Assembly: GCA_964035545.1 (NCBI GenBank)
Contig: CAXIUT010000128.1
Span: 1-45,792 of the forward strand
Length of the DNA stretch: 45,792 nucleotides
Direction of reading: 5' to 3'
Source of the DNA: Bugula neritina
Taxonomy: Eukaryota > Animalia > Bryozoa
Positions 16,002 to 45,407 of this stretch are shown in pieces. Numbering within the stretch: position 1 is the stretch's first letter; the number at the start of each line of letters is the position of its first letter. Position numbers and translations under genes: made by a program. The notes beneath the pieces were generated by a model, which saw only the letters and a program-made list of their open reading frames with translations, was not told where the DNA came from and did not search any database.

Positions 16002-16986
16002 ATGATAAAAGAGAAACAAACAGTCAATAGAACAGGAATGGTCTTTAACAAATCTTATGGACAACATATCCTCATCAACTCACACATCCTCACTGAAATG
16101 GTCAACAAATCAGCCATTAGACCCACAGATGTCGTCTCTAGATAGGTCCAGGTACAGGCAACCTCACAGCTCTCTTGCTAGAAAGAGCAAAAAAAGTTAT
16201 TGCCATTGAAATCGACCCTCGGATGGTAGCATAACTTTCCAAAAGATTCAAATACTCAGAATATGCACATAAATTTGTCCTCATCCCAGGAGATGTACTC
16301 ACGAACCAACTACCTTTCTTCGATGTCTGCGTAGCAAATATACCCTACCAGATCAGCTCTCCTCTCGTATTCAAACTCCTCTCACAAAAACCAATGTTCA
16401 GATGCGCAGTCATTATGTTCCAGAAAGAATTCGCACAAAGATTAATCGCTAAAGCTGGCTCAGATCTATATTGTAGACTTAGTGTAAACGTTCAACTACT
16501 AGCTAAGGTGGATCATTTGATAAAGGTGGGCAAGAACAACTTCAAGCCACCTCCAAAGGTCGAGAGTAGTATTGTAAGAATAGAGCCTAAGACTCCTTTA
16601 CCAGATATTGATTTCTTGTAATGGGATGGAATGCTAAGAATATGTTTTATTCGAAAGAATAAAACCCTTAAAGCAGCTTTCAAACAAAAAAAGTTCTACA
16701 ACTACTAAGAGCCAATTCTTCAAAGCATTAATCGATATCAAGTGATAAATTAGTTGAGCAGTTGGGCAAGATGTAGGTAGCAGAAGAGGTCCATTCCTAG
16801 GATGAAGGAGATAAGATGTAGTAGGAATTGAAGGAGGGAGATAACTAGCTAAAATAGTTCAGAGATAAGATTAATTAGATTTTAGATGATTAAACATTTA
16901 AAGATAAAAGATCATCAAAATTGGTACTTGATGATTTTCTTAAATTGCTTTACAACTTCAATAAAAACAACATCCACTTCTACTGA
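16002..16986 (+). CDS. DIM1: 18S rRNA dimethyladenosine transferase
   Basis: [10 protein letters not shown], (L)[67 protein letters not shown]; two 1-nt deletions (~16136, ~16690). Confidence 0.97.
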
Positions 16987-17071
16987 TCTATCCCGTCCTA
17001 TTATCTATCATTTATCAATATCTATTTGAACTAATCATAATATCATCTAAAATATATTCAAAATGTAGAAA

Positions 17072-17740
17072 TCAAAGAGAACTGACATAGTTGTAATCCA
17101 GACATATCTGATGAGTAGTTTTTTTGCGCATTCTTCTTAAAATCCGATGGCAACTGTTGATTTTTCTAACTACCTAACTCCCTATCTTTCCAATTAGACT
17201 TCATCAATTTAACTGGCCGATTGCCCACATACTTACCATTCAACTCCTTAAGCGCCTTCAAAAAATCCTGAGCACCCCCCAAAGAAACAAACCCATACCC
17301 CTTAGTCTTCCAGTTCTTCTATCTCGAATAACCCGACCCATCTGAAACGAAGAATACCTTCTAAAAACATTAGATAAAATCTAATCATTTACCTAATTCC
17401 CCAAATTCCCACAAAAGATTCTATACCCATTCTAAGGCCAATCTTCCATAGTTTTGTCTTCCCACACCTCACCCGCAGCCTTTCTCATCCCTCTATGTTC
17501 TTTCACCTCCTCTTTCTTTATCTTCTTATTCTTCTTGATCTTCTACTCCTGCTATTCTTATTCTTACTATATCTTTGATTATGGTTTCGGTTATGATACT
17601 TTCTTTGGTTATTTTTTGTTGATTATGAAGGTATTAGGCTTGATGTTTTTGTTGAGAAGCATGTTATCTAATTTTTGGTTAAGCTGCTTTATTTTTTATT
17701 ATTTAGTCAACTCGACGACCTGTTCTATTGGATGATCCAT
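17072..17740 (-). CDS. RBM42: RBM42-like RRM protein
   Basis: RKAAGEVWEDKTMEDWP(E)NGYRIFCGNLGN(E)VND..., KTKGYGFVS, ELNGKYVGNRPVKLMKSNWKDR; 3' end approximate. Confidence 0.9.
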
Positions 17741-17947
17741 CTCTATAAACTAATATTATTAATAAACTATATTTTTATAAATATATATAAAACTAAACTA
17801 CATAACTACTTCCACTTAATCTTACCCTCATTCGAACAAATAAAGACCATAAATACTTATTTTAATCATTACTCATAGGTAGTTATCAAATATATGCTAT
17901 AAAATAATTAAGATAATAATTTATTAACTATAATTATAAATATACTA

Positions 17948-18796
17948 ATGACCACATCCCGTTCTTCCACTCCCAGTCATCTCCCTCTAAAATACACCTA
18001 CAAAACAGCCGACACCCCCTCCAAATCATATCACAACCTCTCAACAAGAAAAGAACAACCTTTAGTAAAAAAATAATCAAGAATAAAAAAAAGAGAACCC
18101 AAACAATACCCCACCCATCTAACCAAAACAAACAAAAATCCACTAACCTAATACACCAATTAAAACATCGATAAATGTCTAGATTTAGCATAATATCATA
18201 AGAAAGAATCCCTGGCTCTGAAAAAAGAAATTAAGGGTTAGAAAAGGTAGTTAAAGAACAAAGATGCTAGCTAGATCTGTTGAAAATGGAAATCTAGGAA
18301 TTGAGAGCTAATATACAAATGAATATGATTCAAAATAATAATAATAGATAGCAAGAATATCTTAGGAAGTAGTATGAGGATGATAACTGCCAAATATCAA
18401 GAAGAAAATAATATCTAAAACTATACTAATTCTATAAACACAGATGATATAGATATAAATAGTCAACCGCTATGGTGCCAAAAATGCAAAGACAAAGATA
18501 CATACTAAGAGCAAATAAGAAACAAATACAATAGTGAACTCAGACATCTTGAATAAGAAATAAAAATACTAAAAGATAAAGAATTAATGGTTGACGTCTT
18601 AAACCAACAAGTCCAAAATAAAAATTAATGTATCGATTATCTAAGAAGTTAACTTTAGACTGTCTAGAGCAATTCTTCAAGATTGTTGGATGTTATACAA
18701 ACGCTTGAAGGGAGAATGCAGGAATTGGAAACTAGTAGTTCGATTGGGAAATACAGAAAGTCGGCTTTTCATAGTTTCAGTGGATCTAAATACTGA
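17948..18796 (+). CDS. Coiled-coil hypothetical protein
   Basis: ATG-to-TGA region with a Ser/Thr/Pro-rich N-terminus and E/K/Q heptad-rich body under TAR=Glu. Confidence 0.7.
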
Positions 18797-18866
18797 TCAA
18801 ATCATAATAATAACATTTTAAATATCTATGTTAATAATAATAATAAATTATATTTTGTTTTAGAAA

Positions 18867-42407: not shown

Positions 42408-42436
42408 TTAATAATTATAAACTAACAAATTACAAA

Positions 42437-43063
42437 TCATATCAATTTTCTATTTGGCGATTGGTATTGCTAACGCAGATGGACATGGATTAGATGCTGC
42501 TGGTATTGCTTGTCTAATTGGGTCAGAAGTAGATCAGAAGTTGCTTTGATGTTTTTTTTCATTTTAGATAAGTAGCGGTCTTGCAGCTGTTTCTCATAGT
42601 TTTGTCGATCTCCGTATTTTCTGATTAGTTATAATGATCTATTTTTTTTGTTTTTTATTTGACAAGAATTATAACTTTTCTTTTTACTTTTTGATATTAT
42701 GTTCATAGATTGTAAAACCAAGTCCAACCTTTGAACTCTACCCGTCGACATCTCATCTTTAATATAATTATCTGATGAAGTTATATGCTAATTACTCTTG
42801 TAAATTTAATTAGAATTAGAAAGTTAGAGTTTCTGACTGTTTTTACTGTTCTTATGCATTTTCTTTCTTTTCCTTCTTATCATTATCTTTTTCTATCTAC
42901 TATTGCTATAATTTACTCTCCTATTATTGTCTTTGTGATTATTTATAATATTGTCTTTTCGACTATCGCCTATCATCATCTTAGCTTCACTATGATTTTA
43001 TATTGATTTCGATATCTATTCGAATGATTGATTTTCTTATTTGATTTGTTTATTTTTATCCAT
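42437..43063 (-). CDS. Hypothetical basic low-complexity protein
   Basis: MDKNKQIK... to NRKLI-TGA with at least one unresolved frame change. Confidence 0.45.
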
Positions 43064-43157
43064 TATTTTTTTAAACCTTTTGATTTTTTTTTATAGCTGC
43101 TTTATTTTGTTTTTTTACATACTACTAATAATAGCTGTTATAATATTAGATTCAAAA

Positions 43158-44387
43158 ATGTTGCTACCTCCAAAACCAAAACAAAACCACAAAGATTAAG
43201 ATTCAATCATAAATAGTTTTTACCAATAAAGAAAACAAAGAATCAATAGCCAACAACACCACAACCTCCTCAAAAAAAATATATCCTTCTTCCACAACAA
43301 CCAACAATCATAACCAAAATAATCATCTACAACCCATCAAGAAGCATCTACAACCCATCAAGAAACATCACATAGATCATTGTAAAATATACAGAAAAAT
43401 CAAACAAAAAAATTATCAATACCTCCTCTACCTCATCATGTCTAGTCTAGTCAAATCAACATGTCCAAACAAAATAGAAGCAAATCTTTGTTATTATTGG
43501 AACGATCGCAAGGCAGCATCGGGTAAAAATTGTCTTCGAACTAAAATCAACATCAGGAGGAGGAATAGTTCAGATCGTAAATTAAAAATAGAATCAATAA
43601 AACTATCAATATCAATCAGTATCTCAGTCAACTAGAATAAAAAAACATCGATGATCAAGTTTAAAATATCAAATAGGAAAAAGGAGTATAAAATATGAAG
43701 AAAATATCATAAAACCAAATCAGAACCAATCATTTCATTCCATCACAATAGCGATCGCCATCATAGAAAAGTCTATTCCACTAGAGTTCCATCCACGAAG
43801 GAGGCAGCCGCATATAGCAATCAGAATCATTCAGCATGATTTCGCATTACCCATCTAATAGTCGAAAAGATAGTCATAGATAACATAGCGGCTAGGATAG
43901 AAATATGATAGAAAGGAGATCAAGAGCAATCAAACATACGTTTGGAAGCAATAAATCATCAAAATCATCACATTCTAGCTTAAAAAGATATCATTAACCA
44001 GAACATATTCATAACTGCTTGACTAACTAGGAATTAGAATAACTCAATTAAAATTCACATCCTCTCAGACAATCAACTCATCTAAGAGAGTCAACTCATC
44101 TTAGGGAGTCAGCTCATCTAAAGGAATCAAAGAAGTAAAATATTCAGCCTCTCAGCTATACACTCAAATACAACTACCCTGAACTTAAAGTATAATAGAA
44201 GTAGAAAAAAAGAGTTCAATCTCTTGAATAATAAATATAGTAATTAAAAGCAAAAAGCAAGAAGCAGTAAAAATTCATTCAAAGCGTCATGAAGATGAGA
44301 AAGATCATGTCTAACGACTAATCCTTGAATTAGAACTGTTCATTAAAGGAACTGTGGCGCTGGGTGAAGCAACTACCAAAAAAATGA
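43158..44387 (+). CDS. Hypothetical low-complexity protein with C-terminal coiled coil
   Basis: 410-codon open frame; internal 21-nt duplication (STTHQE twice, ~43322-43364) and STHLRE-type 18-nt repeats (~44071-44130); ends ELWRWVKQLPKK-TGA. Confidence 0.8.
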
Positions 44388-44478
44388 ATAATAATAATTT
44401 GATATATATGATATTATTTCAATAATATTACTAGGATATATGCTAATTAGAGCAAATGATGAGGATAAGATATTAATA

Positions 44479-45407
44479 TCAGCGATTTGCTTTGAGTTTT
44501 GCTAGAAAAGTTTAATAACGTTTCCTTTATAGATCTCTAAAATTTAACAATTGTTTCTATTTTTGCTATTTCTATTTAATAACTATCTTCAATCTACCCT
44601 ACAACCTCACATTCTACTACTTTAGCCACTCTTCCCTAACCTTTATTTATTCTTTGTCCTTAATATTTTAATTTTTATCTATTTTTTATTCCATCGACTT
44701 GATTGTCTCCTTGAGTTGCTTATTCAATTCGATCTAGCCATCATATAACAGCCTAACTGACTAGATTTATTTGATCAATCGACTATTCTAAATCTTTAGC
44801 TATTTCTTAGCAATTTTTATCAATTGCTAAACATTATTATGTTTTATATTACACTTTTAAAACTACAACATCAATACCTCAACCATAATATCCAATTTCT
44901 ACATCTAGAATAAATTCTCATCCATCAACTCACCCACACCCATCTCTATTTCCCATATTCTTTTATTCTATCTATGCTCCCCATCAGAAAATATACTGCT
45001 TTTCAATTTAAACTAAGGAGGCATCAATAAACCAGATTAACTATGAATTTTTATCTATGACTACTCACATCTTTCCAACTGATTTTTGATCAATTTTTAA
45101 ACTTCTTTTAATTTATTGGATATTTTATTCAGATGTCCGCACACTTATCTTTGGAGTTTAGATCTCAACTGGCACTCTTACTCGTGCTTGTCTTTGAAAA
45201 GCTAGTAAAGTCGAAATTATCTTATGTTTTTTAGTTGGGAATAAATGGTTTAGATTTTTTTGTCCATTTAAAGGATTACAATGTTTTGCTGGTCGATTAT
45301 TTACTATTTTTCTTTTAAGACTGCGATCAGGTCTAAATATAACTATTGTTACTTCTGCTAGCTTATATATCTTTAAGTTCTGATAAAATTTGGAGGTTAT
45401 CTGTCAT
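44479..45407 (-). CDS. Coiled-coil hypothetical protein
   Basis: Open after removing a 20-nt intron (45333-45352); E/K heptad-rich; ends KANR-TGA. Confidence 0.75.

Follow-up and report, generated by a model that had tools for sequence, protein, structure and literature searches.

Patchy strand-skew blocks along a peritrich-type ciliate macronuclear chromosome

The chromosome and its genetic code

The stretch of DNA that we analyzed (the window; 45,792 nt, contig CAXIUT010000128.1 of the Bugula neritina assembly GCA_964035545.1) is a complete macronuclear chromosome of the peritrich ciliate type, as its telomeres at both ends indicate: C4A2 repeats at 1..99 and G4T2 repeats at 45676..45792. 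Under the standard code the window contains no open reading frame of at least 200 amino acids, and with TGA as the sole stop it contains 59. When TAA and TAG are read as glutamate, the frames yield coherent protein text that matches conserved families, and seven 20-nt introns of the form GTA...TAG connect frames. The code, the TGA stop, the G4T2 telomeres, and the tiny introns are those of a peritrich nuclear genome. We curated 34 frames, which lack TGA apart from two single in-frame occurrences. Among the plus-strand genes is one for the rRNA dimethylase Dim1 (PF00398, E = 6e-21).

Blocks of C-rich and G-rich sequence

Strand-skew blocks, first described in an earlier note on this DNA, were confirmed. 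The note's six hand counts in 60-nt windows were all exact, both in a minus-strand gene (41341, C20/G4; 41521, C2/G18; 41941, C1/G17; 42241, C32/G3) and in a plus-strand gene (21061, C21/G3; 21361, C3/G13). Its five switches from G-rich to C-rich sequence also proved real on recount, with G-C in the 200 nt to the left and right of +33/-18 (~16950), +10/-18 (17750), +13/-19 (18800), +3/-17 (24450), and +29/-10 (29500). In 100-nt bins, the variance of G-C was 3.1 times that of the shuffle. Third positions flipped with the block, as had been claimed: within genes, the variance of G3-C3 per 30 codons was 23.1, compared to 9.4 ± 0.6 in synonymous shuffles (2.5-fold, z of about 17-22). The note had proposed fourfold-degenerate sites and synonymous shuffling as a check. 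At strictly fourfold sites, taken in runs of 20, the blocks persisted (variance of 9.26 versus 4.37 ± 0.53 when shuffled; 2.1-fold, z = 9.2). The choice of TAG over TAA for glutamate tracked the skew too, with TAG/(TAG+TAA) climbing from.27 to.61 as local sense skew increased. Each of the 14 two-fold codon families shifted in the same direction with local skew, and 13 of the shifts were significant. The axis of the skew is amino versus keto, with C/T-ending and G/A-ending families moving oppositely and together. Amino acid positions were affected as well (r =.51 between third-position and first-plus-second-position skew).

The pattern was not confined to the originally reported range of 16900-45400, where it is indeed present, but extended over the whole chromosome. 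There were about 50 sharp-edged patches, C-rich and G-poor on the plus strand, which span about 140-660 bases and together make up between one quarter and one third of the chromosome. Because the left and right edges were both sharp, "blocks" is a better description than "sawtooth." The pattern was lopsided, with 39 fourfold windows having C-G ≥ 5 on the plus strand and 7 having G-C ≥ 5. The description as a regular oscillation was overstated: autocorrelation was gone at about 150 nt, and the excess spectral power was confined to a broad range of 250-2500 nt (450-2500 nt in a narrower statement). No period was found near the nucleosome repeat of about 150-200 nt (power ratio of 1.06-1.13 at 150-210 nt), and the period of ~200 nt predicted by the note's proposal of nucleosome or 6mA phasing was therefore absent from the spectrum. 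We found no enriched motif or telomere-like word in the patches, and the 20-nt introns did not match block edges. Over the 45 kb, the cumulative skew fell steadily, and no turning point was seen.

Since one C-rich patch (16048..16421; C103 G54) falls inside the conserved Dim1 gene, patches occupy genuine coding sequence. Another (20941..21175; C66 G21) lies at the 5' end of the plus-strand gene 20938-23198 and is followed by a G-rich block (21288-21733; C39 G86). The longest (24525..25185; C157 G69) begins at the ATG of the plus-strand gene 24514-25995. At the 3' end of the plus-strand gene 28252-29457 is a G-rich block (29209..29612; C30 G78), which faces a C-rich patch (29613-30054; C114 G34) across the spacer. 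Within a kinase gene (29783-31680), an internal G-rich block (30732-30970; C12 G46) gives way to a C-rich patch (30971-31151; C54 G17). A further patch (43153..43475; C82 G18) marks the 5' end of the plus-strand gene 43158-44384.

The sign of the skew changed several times within a single minus-strand gene of 1141 codons (38985..42407; starting at 42407 with MGKQAS). Its enclosing frame of 1183 codons contains no in-frame TGA, where composition predicts 27. At the 3' end of this gene is a C-rich patch (38955..39152; C55 G13), so that the sense strand is rich in G and T. Inside it are two more (39463..39815, C102 G25; 41047..41400, C94 G25), the first with a TGA-free frame where about 3.4 TGA are expected by composition (hand calculation from counts). 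A stretch of reverse sign comes next (41438..42079), in which the plus strand is T-rich with G above C, and sense third positions carry 17 C versus 3-4 G in two 60-codon rows. The strongest patch of all (42080..42372; C106 G24) then covers codons 13-110. Internal AT-rich dips had either polarity; at 41400-41497, for example, the order is C-rich, dip, G-rich.

Strand, spacers, and relatives

The data supported the view that the bias is a property of the DNA strand rather than of the transcript. We classed windows by their odd codons and measured composition in their even codons. At fourfold sites, the patches had a plus-strand composition of A.40, C.29, G.06, and T.25, which was the same in plus- and minus-strand genes, as the claimed independence from gene orientation implies. 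Specifically, C-rich windows had A.38, C.31, G.05, and T.25 in plus-strand genes and A.42, C.26, G.07, and T.25 in minus-strand genes, both in plus-strand letters. In baseline windows, fourfold composition agreed in sense-strand letters instead; outside the patches, silent sites of the sense strand were A-rich with C at least equal to G. Fourfold sense C/G was.198/.077 in plus-strand genes and.131/.154 in minus-strand genes. In plus-strand genes, fourfold G outnumbered C by one site at most, whereas sense G exceeded C in 8 of the 14 minus-strand genes. On the plus strand, C exceeded G at third positions in 12/14 minus-strand and 13/20 plus-strand genes. There was a chromosome-wide offset, with C above G and A above T on the plus strand in both gene orientations.

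Several familiar causes did not fit these results. The sense skew was opposite in plus- and minus-strand genes and third positions changed sign within single genes, unlike a transcription-coupled bias, as the earlier note had argued. The skew kept no constant sign relative to the sense strand, and its patchiness held at fourfold sites. Amino acid content did not fit either; the skew survived synonymous shuffles and was present at fourfold sites. Codon bias from translational selection did not describe the data either: two-fold choice flipped by neighborhood, first and second positions followed, and the effect was strand-bound. The sign of silent-site skew followed the DNA strand and not gene orientation, as in replication-type asymmetry. 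A strand-asymmetric mutation or repair pressure fits these observations, while translation, amino acid content, and sense transcription do not.

Patches favored the right flank of AT-rich spacers, irrespective of gene orientation. Within 270 nt of the left gene boundary, on its right side, C exceeded G in 27-29 of 32 genes. Third-position skew there was -.23 to -.53 in plus-strand genes, where this boundary is the 5' end, and -.39 to -.52 in minus-strand genes, where it is the 3' end. The same skew to the right of spacers was found around AT-rich minima without use of gene models. Local skew peaked within roughly 300 bases of the right side of AT-rich spacers, and on the left side it was weak and of opposite sign. 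Distance to gene boundaries accounted for about 8% of the window variance (R2 of.08-.11 for the best boundary model). The spacers themselves were weakly skewed (-.10 for gaps of ≤450 nt). Those of ≤150 nt leaned to C (about 139 C versus 103 G, hand sum), and AT-rich cores had a skew near zero.

Comparison with relatives gave modest support to the claim that the pattern is positionally fixed. Local skew correlated with that of orthologues in a syntenic relative (L002; r =.46 raw, r =.31 after amino acid correction), whose third positions are near saturation (identity of.33-.42). For the kinase gene the correlation was.59 (P =.008), and the G-rich-then-C-rich pair at 30732..31151 recurred as a local pattern in the L002 orthologue. 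The strand effect was absent in two related contigs, L002 and L004. On a 6.5-kb contig of a relative (L001), fourfold counts were C14/G43 in a plus-strand ORF and C58/G13 in a minus-strand ORF, which is the same orientation-independent effect with mirror sign. The evidence for a chromosome-wide offset is accordingly one 45-kb chromosome and one 6.5-kb contig. For an ammonium-transporter orthologue, sense G3-C3 was -107, -25, and +70 in three organisms; the skew is therefore not intrinsic to the gene. Strain differences on the plus strand were 61 T/C versus 30 A/G (run X2), unpolarized, perhaps including paralogous contigs, and from polymorphism counts partly common to several runs.

Candidate explanations for the patches

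We give close to an even chance to the idea that a patchy substitution pressure, bound to the DNA strand, left the blocks behind; it would resemble deamination of the opposite strand and is probably connected with replication or with the exposure of single-stranded DNA. Such a pressure would act on one DNA strand, with a strength that varies sharply along the chromosome. In patches, the plus strand would have gained C and lost G and T, a composition that could arise mainly from A-to-G and C-to-T changes on the minus strand, which are deamination-type transitions. The pressure would have two components, namely the chromosome-wide offset and a local part beside AT-rich spacers. We infer that the minus strand is recurrently exposed as single-stranded DNA. 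The likeliest source would be replication forks that mostly cross from right to left, with the minus strand as lagging-strand template, and exposure may be prolonged where forks meet spacers that are bound by protein or free of nucleosomes. Breaks in the spacers followed by end resection could produce the same local sign. The changes are assumed to arise in the germline micronucleus, as inheritance requires. The earlier note had suggested dense replication start points; if these lay at the spacers and deamination of single strands were responsible, the sign should be the reverse of that observed. Other observations sit poorly with a replication-linked pressure. Patch edges are sharp, whereas a process averaged over many events should give gradients. 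Boundary distance explains little of the variance, internal dips have either polarity, spacers are only weakly skewed, and L002 and L004 lack the strand effect. In plus-strand genes, moreover, part of the extra C is at the expense of A, a change that is no transition.

Known systems share some of these features. Bacterial GC skew and human origin "N-domains" are also tied to the strand, affect silent sites and amino acid content, and follow the keto-versus-amino axis with one sign over tens of kilobases. In contrast, the bias here forms sharp patches of 150-650 nt instead of a smooth domain, no switch point lies within the chromosome, and the sign at spacers is opposite to that expected for origins. 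To our knowledge, a fourfold C:G of up to 5:1, as in the patches, is far above the usual strength for nuclear chromosomes. The fourfold patch profile, with paired T-to-C and G-to-A changes, matches the classic light-strand profile of vertebrate mitochondria, in which the strand left single in replication is deaminated. However, our chromosome is nuclear and telomere capped, its bias is patchy and not graded with exposure time, and A contributes to the C gain. Transcription-linked skews include the G+T excess of mammalian coding strands, GC skew with R-loops at promoters, and C-rich sense strands at plant and fungal starts. They resemble our case in that the strongest patches adjoin intergenic, presumably nucleosome-free spacers and that 3' ends are sense-G-rich. 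They differ in that the sign here is not tied to sense (5' ends are C-rich in plus-strand genes and neutral or G-rich in minus-strand genes) and in that macronuclear transcription is somatic. The skew of Oxytricha and Halteria nanochromosomes is likewise ciliate and macronuclear and reads alike on both strands from 5' to 3', and the authors who described it also doubt that transcription causes it, but it occupies only some 100 nt of noncoding subtelomere or the 3' region of single-gene chromosomes (PMC7858049). Ours recurs at many points of a 45-kb multigene chromosome, within coding sequence and at silent sites, and is accompanied by an offset of the whole chromosome. A further parallel is with the strand-coordinated mutation clusters that yeast and cancer genomes carry at resected breaks or stalled forks. 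On each side of a spacer here, the deaminated-looking strand is apparently the one with its 3' end towards the spacer, a geometry that 5'-to-3' resection or a fork arriving at a barrier would leave. Those clusters are somatic single events, whereas ours would be an evolutionary steady state, and the internal patches break this geometry.

There is a slender chance that the patches record, heritably and at sub-kilobase scale, which DNA strand of a ciliate is left single-stranded time and again. In that case, silent-site composition could by itself chart in fine detail where germline forks run and pause or, in a variant, where meiotic breaks and resection occur. A more radical version would have substitutions of the somatic macronucleus copied to the macronucleus of the following generation, for instance via RNA templates, so that point mutations would cross the germline/soma barrier.

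Selection at the DNA level is a doubtful but credible alternative to a substitution pressure. Chromatin or chromosome function near nucleosome-free spacers (positioning, R-loop control, or replication priming) would preserve C-rich, G-poor tracts on a particular strand, and silent as well as replaceable amino acid sites would be recruited to build them. The sharp edges, the patch positions partly shared with the diverged syntenic relative, and the patches beside spacers whatever the gene direction all favor it. Yet the patches lack both an enriched motif or word and a nucleosome-scale period, one transporter gene has opposite skews among three organisms, and two relatives show no strand effect. 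It is also hard to think of a function that would require the same strand throughout the chromosome.

We judge it unlikely that the skew is gene-polar, with each sense strand running from C-rich at its 5' end to G-rich at its 3' end and the offset a sampling accident of gene placement. Such a pattern reads alike on both strands, and orientation independence would therefore be apparent only. Skew of this kind has been reported around the transcription starts of plants and fungi and at 3' ends of ciliate nanochromosomes. In each of the four classes, the antisymmetric part of our profiles has the expected sign. The 5' ends of plus-strand genes are C-rich with mildly G-rich 3' ends, and 3' ends of minus-strand genes are strongly sense-G-rich. 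A study of Halteria and Oxytricha reported a G-rich 3' coding strand (PMC7858049), and for Paramecium a GC skew has been noted at the +1 nucleosome (PMC13076228). But the magnitudes were unequal by orientation, with sense skew at 5' ends of about -.4 in plus-strand and about 0 in minus-strand genes and at 3' ends of +.15 and +.47, respectively. With equal numbers of parameters, a chromosome-oriented regression outperformed the gene-polar one (RSS of 10458 versus 11693), and the latter was worse than a constant (11389). Its R2 about the mean was thus below zero, so distance from start and stop codons, which the earlier note had named as a possible refutation, does not account for the skew. Long genes with several sign changes, including the strongly sense-G-rich 5' end at 42080-42372, and the recurrence of the orientation-independent effect in L001 also count against polarity, as does the fact that macronuclear transcription alone leaves no heritable mutations.

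A germline mosaic, in which macronuclear joining of segments from differing micronuclear orientations or replication domains turns a uniform bias into blocks, is very unlikely. It would explain sharp edges on both sides and sign changes inside single genes, and the blocks, at 140-660 nt, are similar in length to the segments of scrambled-gene ciliates. However, we know of no scrambling in this ciliate class, the blocks are mostly strong versus baseline and not equal-sized plus versus minus, and their edges do not coincide with the introns. An artifact of assembly, sequencing chemistry, or wrong gene models has next to no chance: long open frames come easily in G-poor DNA when TGA is the only stop, so that some plus-strand "coding" sequence could be spurious, but contigs of three runs from two studies cover 38900-44800 at 97-99.8% identity with the strongest patches included, patches in minus-strand genes keep frames without TGA although each should contain 2-3.4 (hand calculation), and plus-strand gene patches, one of them inside the conserved Dim1 domain, keep codon periodicity (G of.16/.11/.04 at positions 1/2/3).

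Strand-skewed patches on a ciliate chromosome

Telomeric repeats bound the window, C4A2 at its start and G4T2 at its end, which makes it a whole ciliate macronuclear chromosome, 45,792 bases in length. With the standard code, it has no open reading frames (ORFs) of at least 200 codons; with TGA as the only stop, it has 59. Reading TAA and TAG as Glu gives coherent protein sequences, including an rRNA dimethylase (Dim1; PF00398), a mitochondrial carrier (PF00153), an NIF phosphatase (PF03031), an ammonium transporter, kinases, a PPP phosphatase, a DHHC protein, and a PH domain. 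The closest match in an exact-protein look-up was 72% identical. None of the public sequencing runs that contain this stretch is registered as RNA. We dropped a single-codon-table Viterbi gene finder, which called 40% of the window noncoding and missed conserved minus-strand genes. Because these omissions inflated the apparent strand effect, we used 34 curated gene models instead (20 on the plus strand and 14 on the minus strand), whose frames are free of TGA apart from two single in-frame codons. Introns of 20 nt, each with GTA...TAG ends and an A at position -6, join pairs of long TGA-free frames at 14433-14452, 31238-31257, 38081-38100, and 38452-38471 on the plus strand and at 8383-8402, 33272-33291, and 45333-45352 on the minus strand. 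These features agree with a peritrich origin.

Strand asymmetry of base composition is a standard means of reading the history of replication and transcription, but nuclear genomes usually show only a weak asymmetry that varies smoothly. An earlier note had described an oscillation between C-rich and G-rich blocks at 16900-45400 on this chromosome. Its six 60-nt hand counts and the five G-to-C switch points that it named were all exact. We confirmed the observation with corrections: the blocks are sharp-edged, lopsided patches rather than an oscillation, and the skew found in that range extends over the whole chromosome. A three-state composition model identified about 50 patches of at least 140 nt, the longest being 660 nt (rough median by eye, ~215 nt). 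Patches make up 26 to 34% of the chromosome and have a plus-strand composition of A.40, C.24, G.09, and T.27. Neither autocorrelation nor the power spectrum revealed a defined period in the window: skew autocorrelation reached zero by ~150 nt, and excess spectral power was broad (250 to 2,500 nt). A sawtooth shape was rejected by a step statistic, in which C-to-G edges were as sharp as G-to-C edges. The pattern is lopsided toward C on the plus strand, where C exceeded G by at least 5 in 39 fourfold windows and G exceeded C by as much in only 7. Word counts within patches equaled the Markov expectation, with no enriched words or telomere-like motif, and degenerate telomere repeats were rejected as patch content (33 C-runs versus 36.5 expected).

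The skew reaches into synonymous codons. In 100-nt bins, the variance of G minus C was 3.1 times that of the shuffle. Within genes, the variance of third-position G minus C (G3-C3) per 30 codons was 23.1, compared with 9.4 ± 0.6 after synonymous codons were shuffled within each gene (z = 17 to 22 in an earlier gene set), in line with the earlier claim that third positions flip with local skew. That note had stated that it would be refuted by blocks that were lost at fourfold sites or were no different from shuffled controls. Neither was the case: at strictly fourfold sites in runs of 20, with shuffling within codon family, the blocks persisted (variance of 9.26 versus 4.37 ± 0.53; z = 9.2). 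All 14 two-fold families tracked the skew of the 30 neighboring codons, 13 of them significantly. The suspected dependence of Glu codon choice was borne out, with TAG/(TAG+TAA) going from.27 to.61 with local skew, while GAG went from.11 to.49 and TTC/(TTC+TTT) from.54 to.25. Furthermore, the first two codon positions were skewed in step with the third (r =.51), and thus amino acid content is pushed as well.

These blocks are not an artifact. The region at 38900-44800, which includes the strongest patches, is covered by contigs from three public sequencing runs in two studies at 97 to 99.8% identity. Patches in minus-strand genes keep a frame without TGA, where composition predicts 2 to 3.4 TGAs per patch (an expectation calculated by hand), and those in plus-strand genes retain codon periodicity (G of.16,.11, and.04 at positions 1, 2, and 3). 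One patch lies within the conserved catalytic region of Dim1. Arrays of tiny introns were rejected as the cause of G/T-rich sense blocks, which are in frame and TGA-free; the best 20-nt GT..AG candidate (42348-42329), read from the sequence, has no A at position -6. Directly ahead of the strongest patch, a 1,141-codon minus-strand gene begins with MGKQAS (42407-42372), an N-myristoylation-type start, which speaks for the ATG at 42407 being the true start.

Chromosome strand, gene direction, and spacers

To separate the chromosome strand from the sense strand, 40-codon windows were classed on odd codons and measured only on even codons, which removes selection bias. The fourfold composition of C-rich windows, in plus-strand letters, was nearly identical in plus-strand genes (A.38, C.31, G.05, T.25) and minus-strand genes (A.42, C.26, G.07, T.25), upholding the claim that block composition is independent of gene orientation. 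Baseline windows instead matched each other when read on the sense strand (about A.45, T.31, C.14, and G.06 to.13). Therefore, patch composition goes with the chromosome strand, and composition elsewhere goes with the transcript. When fourfold sites were pooled on the sense strand, C and G were.198 and.077 in plus-strand genes and.131 and.154 in minus-strand genes. Fourfold G exceeded C by more than one site in 8 of the 14 minus-strand genes and in no plus-strand gene.

Part of the skew is anchored at gene boundaries. In plus-strand letters, third-position skew within 270 nt of a left boundary, on its right side, was -.23 to -.53 at the 5' ends of plus-strand genes and -.39 to -.52 at the 3' ends of minus-strand genes, and C exceeded G in 27 to 29 of 32 genes. 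At right boundaries, it was +.11 to +.22 for plus-strand genes and -.01 to -.16 for minus-strand genes. Around intergenic AT-rich minima, which require no gene models, G minus C per base was +.007 at -200 to -101 and -.112 at +200 to +299; at internal AT-rich dips, either polarity occurs. The C-rich-then-G-rich order between spacers (AT-rich intergenic stretches) reads identically on both strands, so that part alone would seem orientation independent even if it were gene-polar. The common offset is the part that cannot be gene-polar. The earlier note had allowed that distance from start and stop codons might fully explain the blocks. However, with equal numbers of parameters, a chromosome-oriented regression had a residual sum of squares of 10458 versus 11693 for a gene-polar one, which was poorer than a constant, and boundary distance accounted for only 8 to 11% of window variance. 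The patchiness is mostly intragenic and is not explained by distance from boundaries.

Skew in relatives and strains

Two metagenome contigs of relatives (L002 and L003; G4T2 telomere, 39% GC) are syntenic with 26.9 to 32.2 kb of the window. Third-position identity is near saturation (.33 to.42), and local G3-C3 per 30 codons was correlated between the window and its syntenic relative (r =.46). Once the amino acid expectation was removed, the correlation was.31 (P =.03) overall, and the kinase gene alone gave.59 (P =.008). This is modest evidence that skew positions persist. We saw no strand-bound effect in L002 or in another relative, L004. In the GC-richer relatives, AT-rich minima were too shallow to define spacers and gave only weak cross-correlation of the same sign. 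Another contig, L001 (6.5 kb, 40% GC), carries the strand-bound effect with mirrored sign, with fourfold counts of C14/G43 in its plus-strand ORF and C58/G13 in its minus-strand ORF. Sense G3-C3 of the ammonium-transporter orthologue was -107 in L002, -25 in the window, and +70 in L001, and therefore the skew is a matter of genomic context rather than of the gene itself. Between the kinase-gene orthologue and that of its neighbor, L002 has ~5 kb of extra genes (3400-8480); the corresponding place in the window is a spacer of just 320 nt (29460-29780).

Between strains, comparison of the window with a public sequencing run (X2) gave 61 T/C and 30 A/G differences on the plus strand, with T>C at 41 and A>G at 19 for nearly equal numbers of sites. 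The direction is the one that a mutational origin would give, but the counts are unpolarized. Strain indels at 43051, 43345, 43747, 44094, and 44674 are 6, 21, 3, 18, and 6 nt long, all multiples of three, as expected within coding sequence. A contig of run X2 departs from the window after 39694, in a C-rich patch of the large minus-strand gene, and continues with 21 letters of a telomere-like C4A2-type repeat, whose polarity is not that expected of a right-hand end. Either alternative telomere addition at this site or a chimeric contig might account for it.

Possible origins and consequences

The pattern shows a pressure that is bound to the DNA strand, patchy in intensity, and exerted on silent sites, on replaceable amino acid sites, and weakly on spacers. 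Its axis is amino/keto: on the plus strand, T gives way to C and G to A. The strand-bound fourfold composition and the push on codon positions 1 and 2 support the strand-asymmetric, DNA-level process proposed earlier, an interpretation that held in part, since some of the mechanisms named for it are disfavored. We put a strand-bound mutational origin as a whole at slightly under an even chance. The plus-strand changes equal A to G and C to T on the minus strand, which we infer to be a signature of deamination in single-stranded DNA, and beside spacers the deaminated-looking strand would be the one with its 3' end toward the spacer. If forks moved mostly from right to left, the minus strand would be the lagging-strand template, creating a chromosome-wide offset, and its exposure might be prolonged where forks meet spacers. 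This fork-direction version is unlikely on its own, carrying about half of the probability of the mutational origin. Resection that starts at breaks within the spacers would also suit this sign, with the offset arising separately. The main weakness of a mutational origin is that heritable change would have to arise in the micronucleus; the sharp edges of the patches, the small share explained by position, and the partly nontransition gain of C in plus-strand genes are further weaknesses.

Other sources fared less well. The earlier note suggested dense, fixed replication or repair start points. Replication starting at spacers is probably disfavored by the sign beside them, because the lagging-strand template would be the other strand. 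The sign also argues against sense transcription, since 5' ends of plus-strand genes would then be C-poor. Moreover, ciliates keep a silent germline nucleus separate from the transcribed somatic nucleus, and thus transcription-coupled mutation in the soma cannot be the cause. Nucleosome phasing, also named earlier, is disfavored because there is no period and no excess power at 150 to 210 nt.

Among known systems, the pattern behaves like replication-type strand asymmetry and resembles the mitochondrial light strand in composition, with silent-site C:G in patches up to 5:1. Unlike these, it is nuclear, very strong, patchy at 150 to 650 nt, and partly anchored at intergenic spacers. It lacks the defining behavior of transcription-coupled skew, translational codon bias, nucleosome phasing, and start/stop-distance skew. 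The reports that come nearest in ciliates are of nanochromosome skews (PMC7858049) and, in Paramecium, of a GC skew at the +1 nucleosome (PMC13076228), but neither describes orientation-independent patches within genes and at silent sites. Our literature search found no account of this pattern in peritrichs.

Patches that disregard gene direction and shift amino acid content force a choice among a sub-kilobase germline replication or repair process, selection on strand composition, and soma-to-soma passage of sequence. The bias also distorts codon-usage statistics, substitution models, and gene finding in this group, the last because G-poor DNA, read with TGA as its sole stop, yields long open frames by chance.

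Having TGA as the sole stop leaves the true 3' limits of genes uncertain. For a PQ-loop-like membrane gene (13841-14790), the plus frame is uninterrupted as far as 14961, and this extension (14791-14961) runs for ~170 nt into the 3' end of the convergent mitochondrial-carrier gene. The two single in-frame TGAs, at 21352-21354 in the plus-strand gene at 20938-23198 (...DRE-TGA-SVFWVF...) and at one codon within 17779-18883, interrupt otherwise continuous frames and could reflect read-through or recoding, or else two abutting genes. Finally, 4462-5274 and 5320-6855 share a reading frame but are parted by two in-frame TGAs that lie 42 nt from each other (5275-5319); this is either a read-through pair or a very short intergenic gap, and a C-rich patch begins directly after the TGAs.
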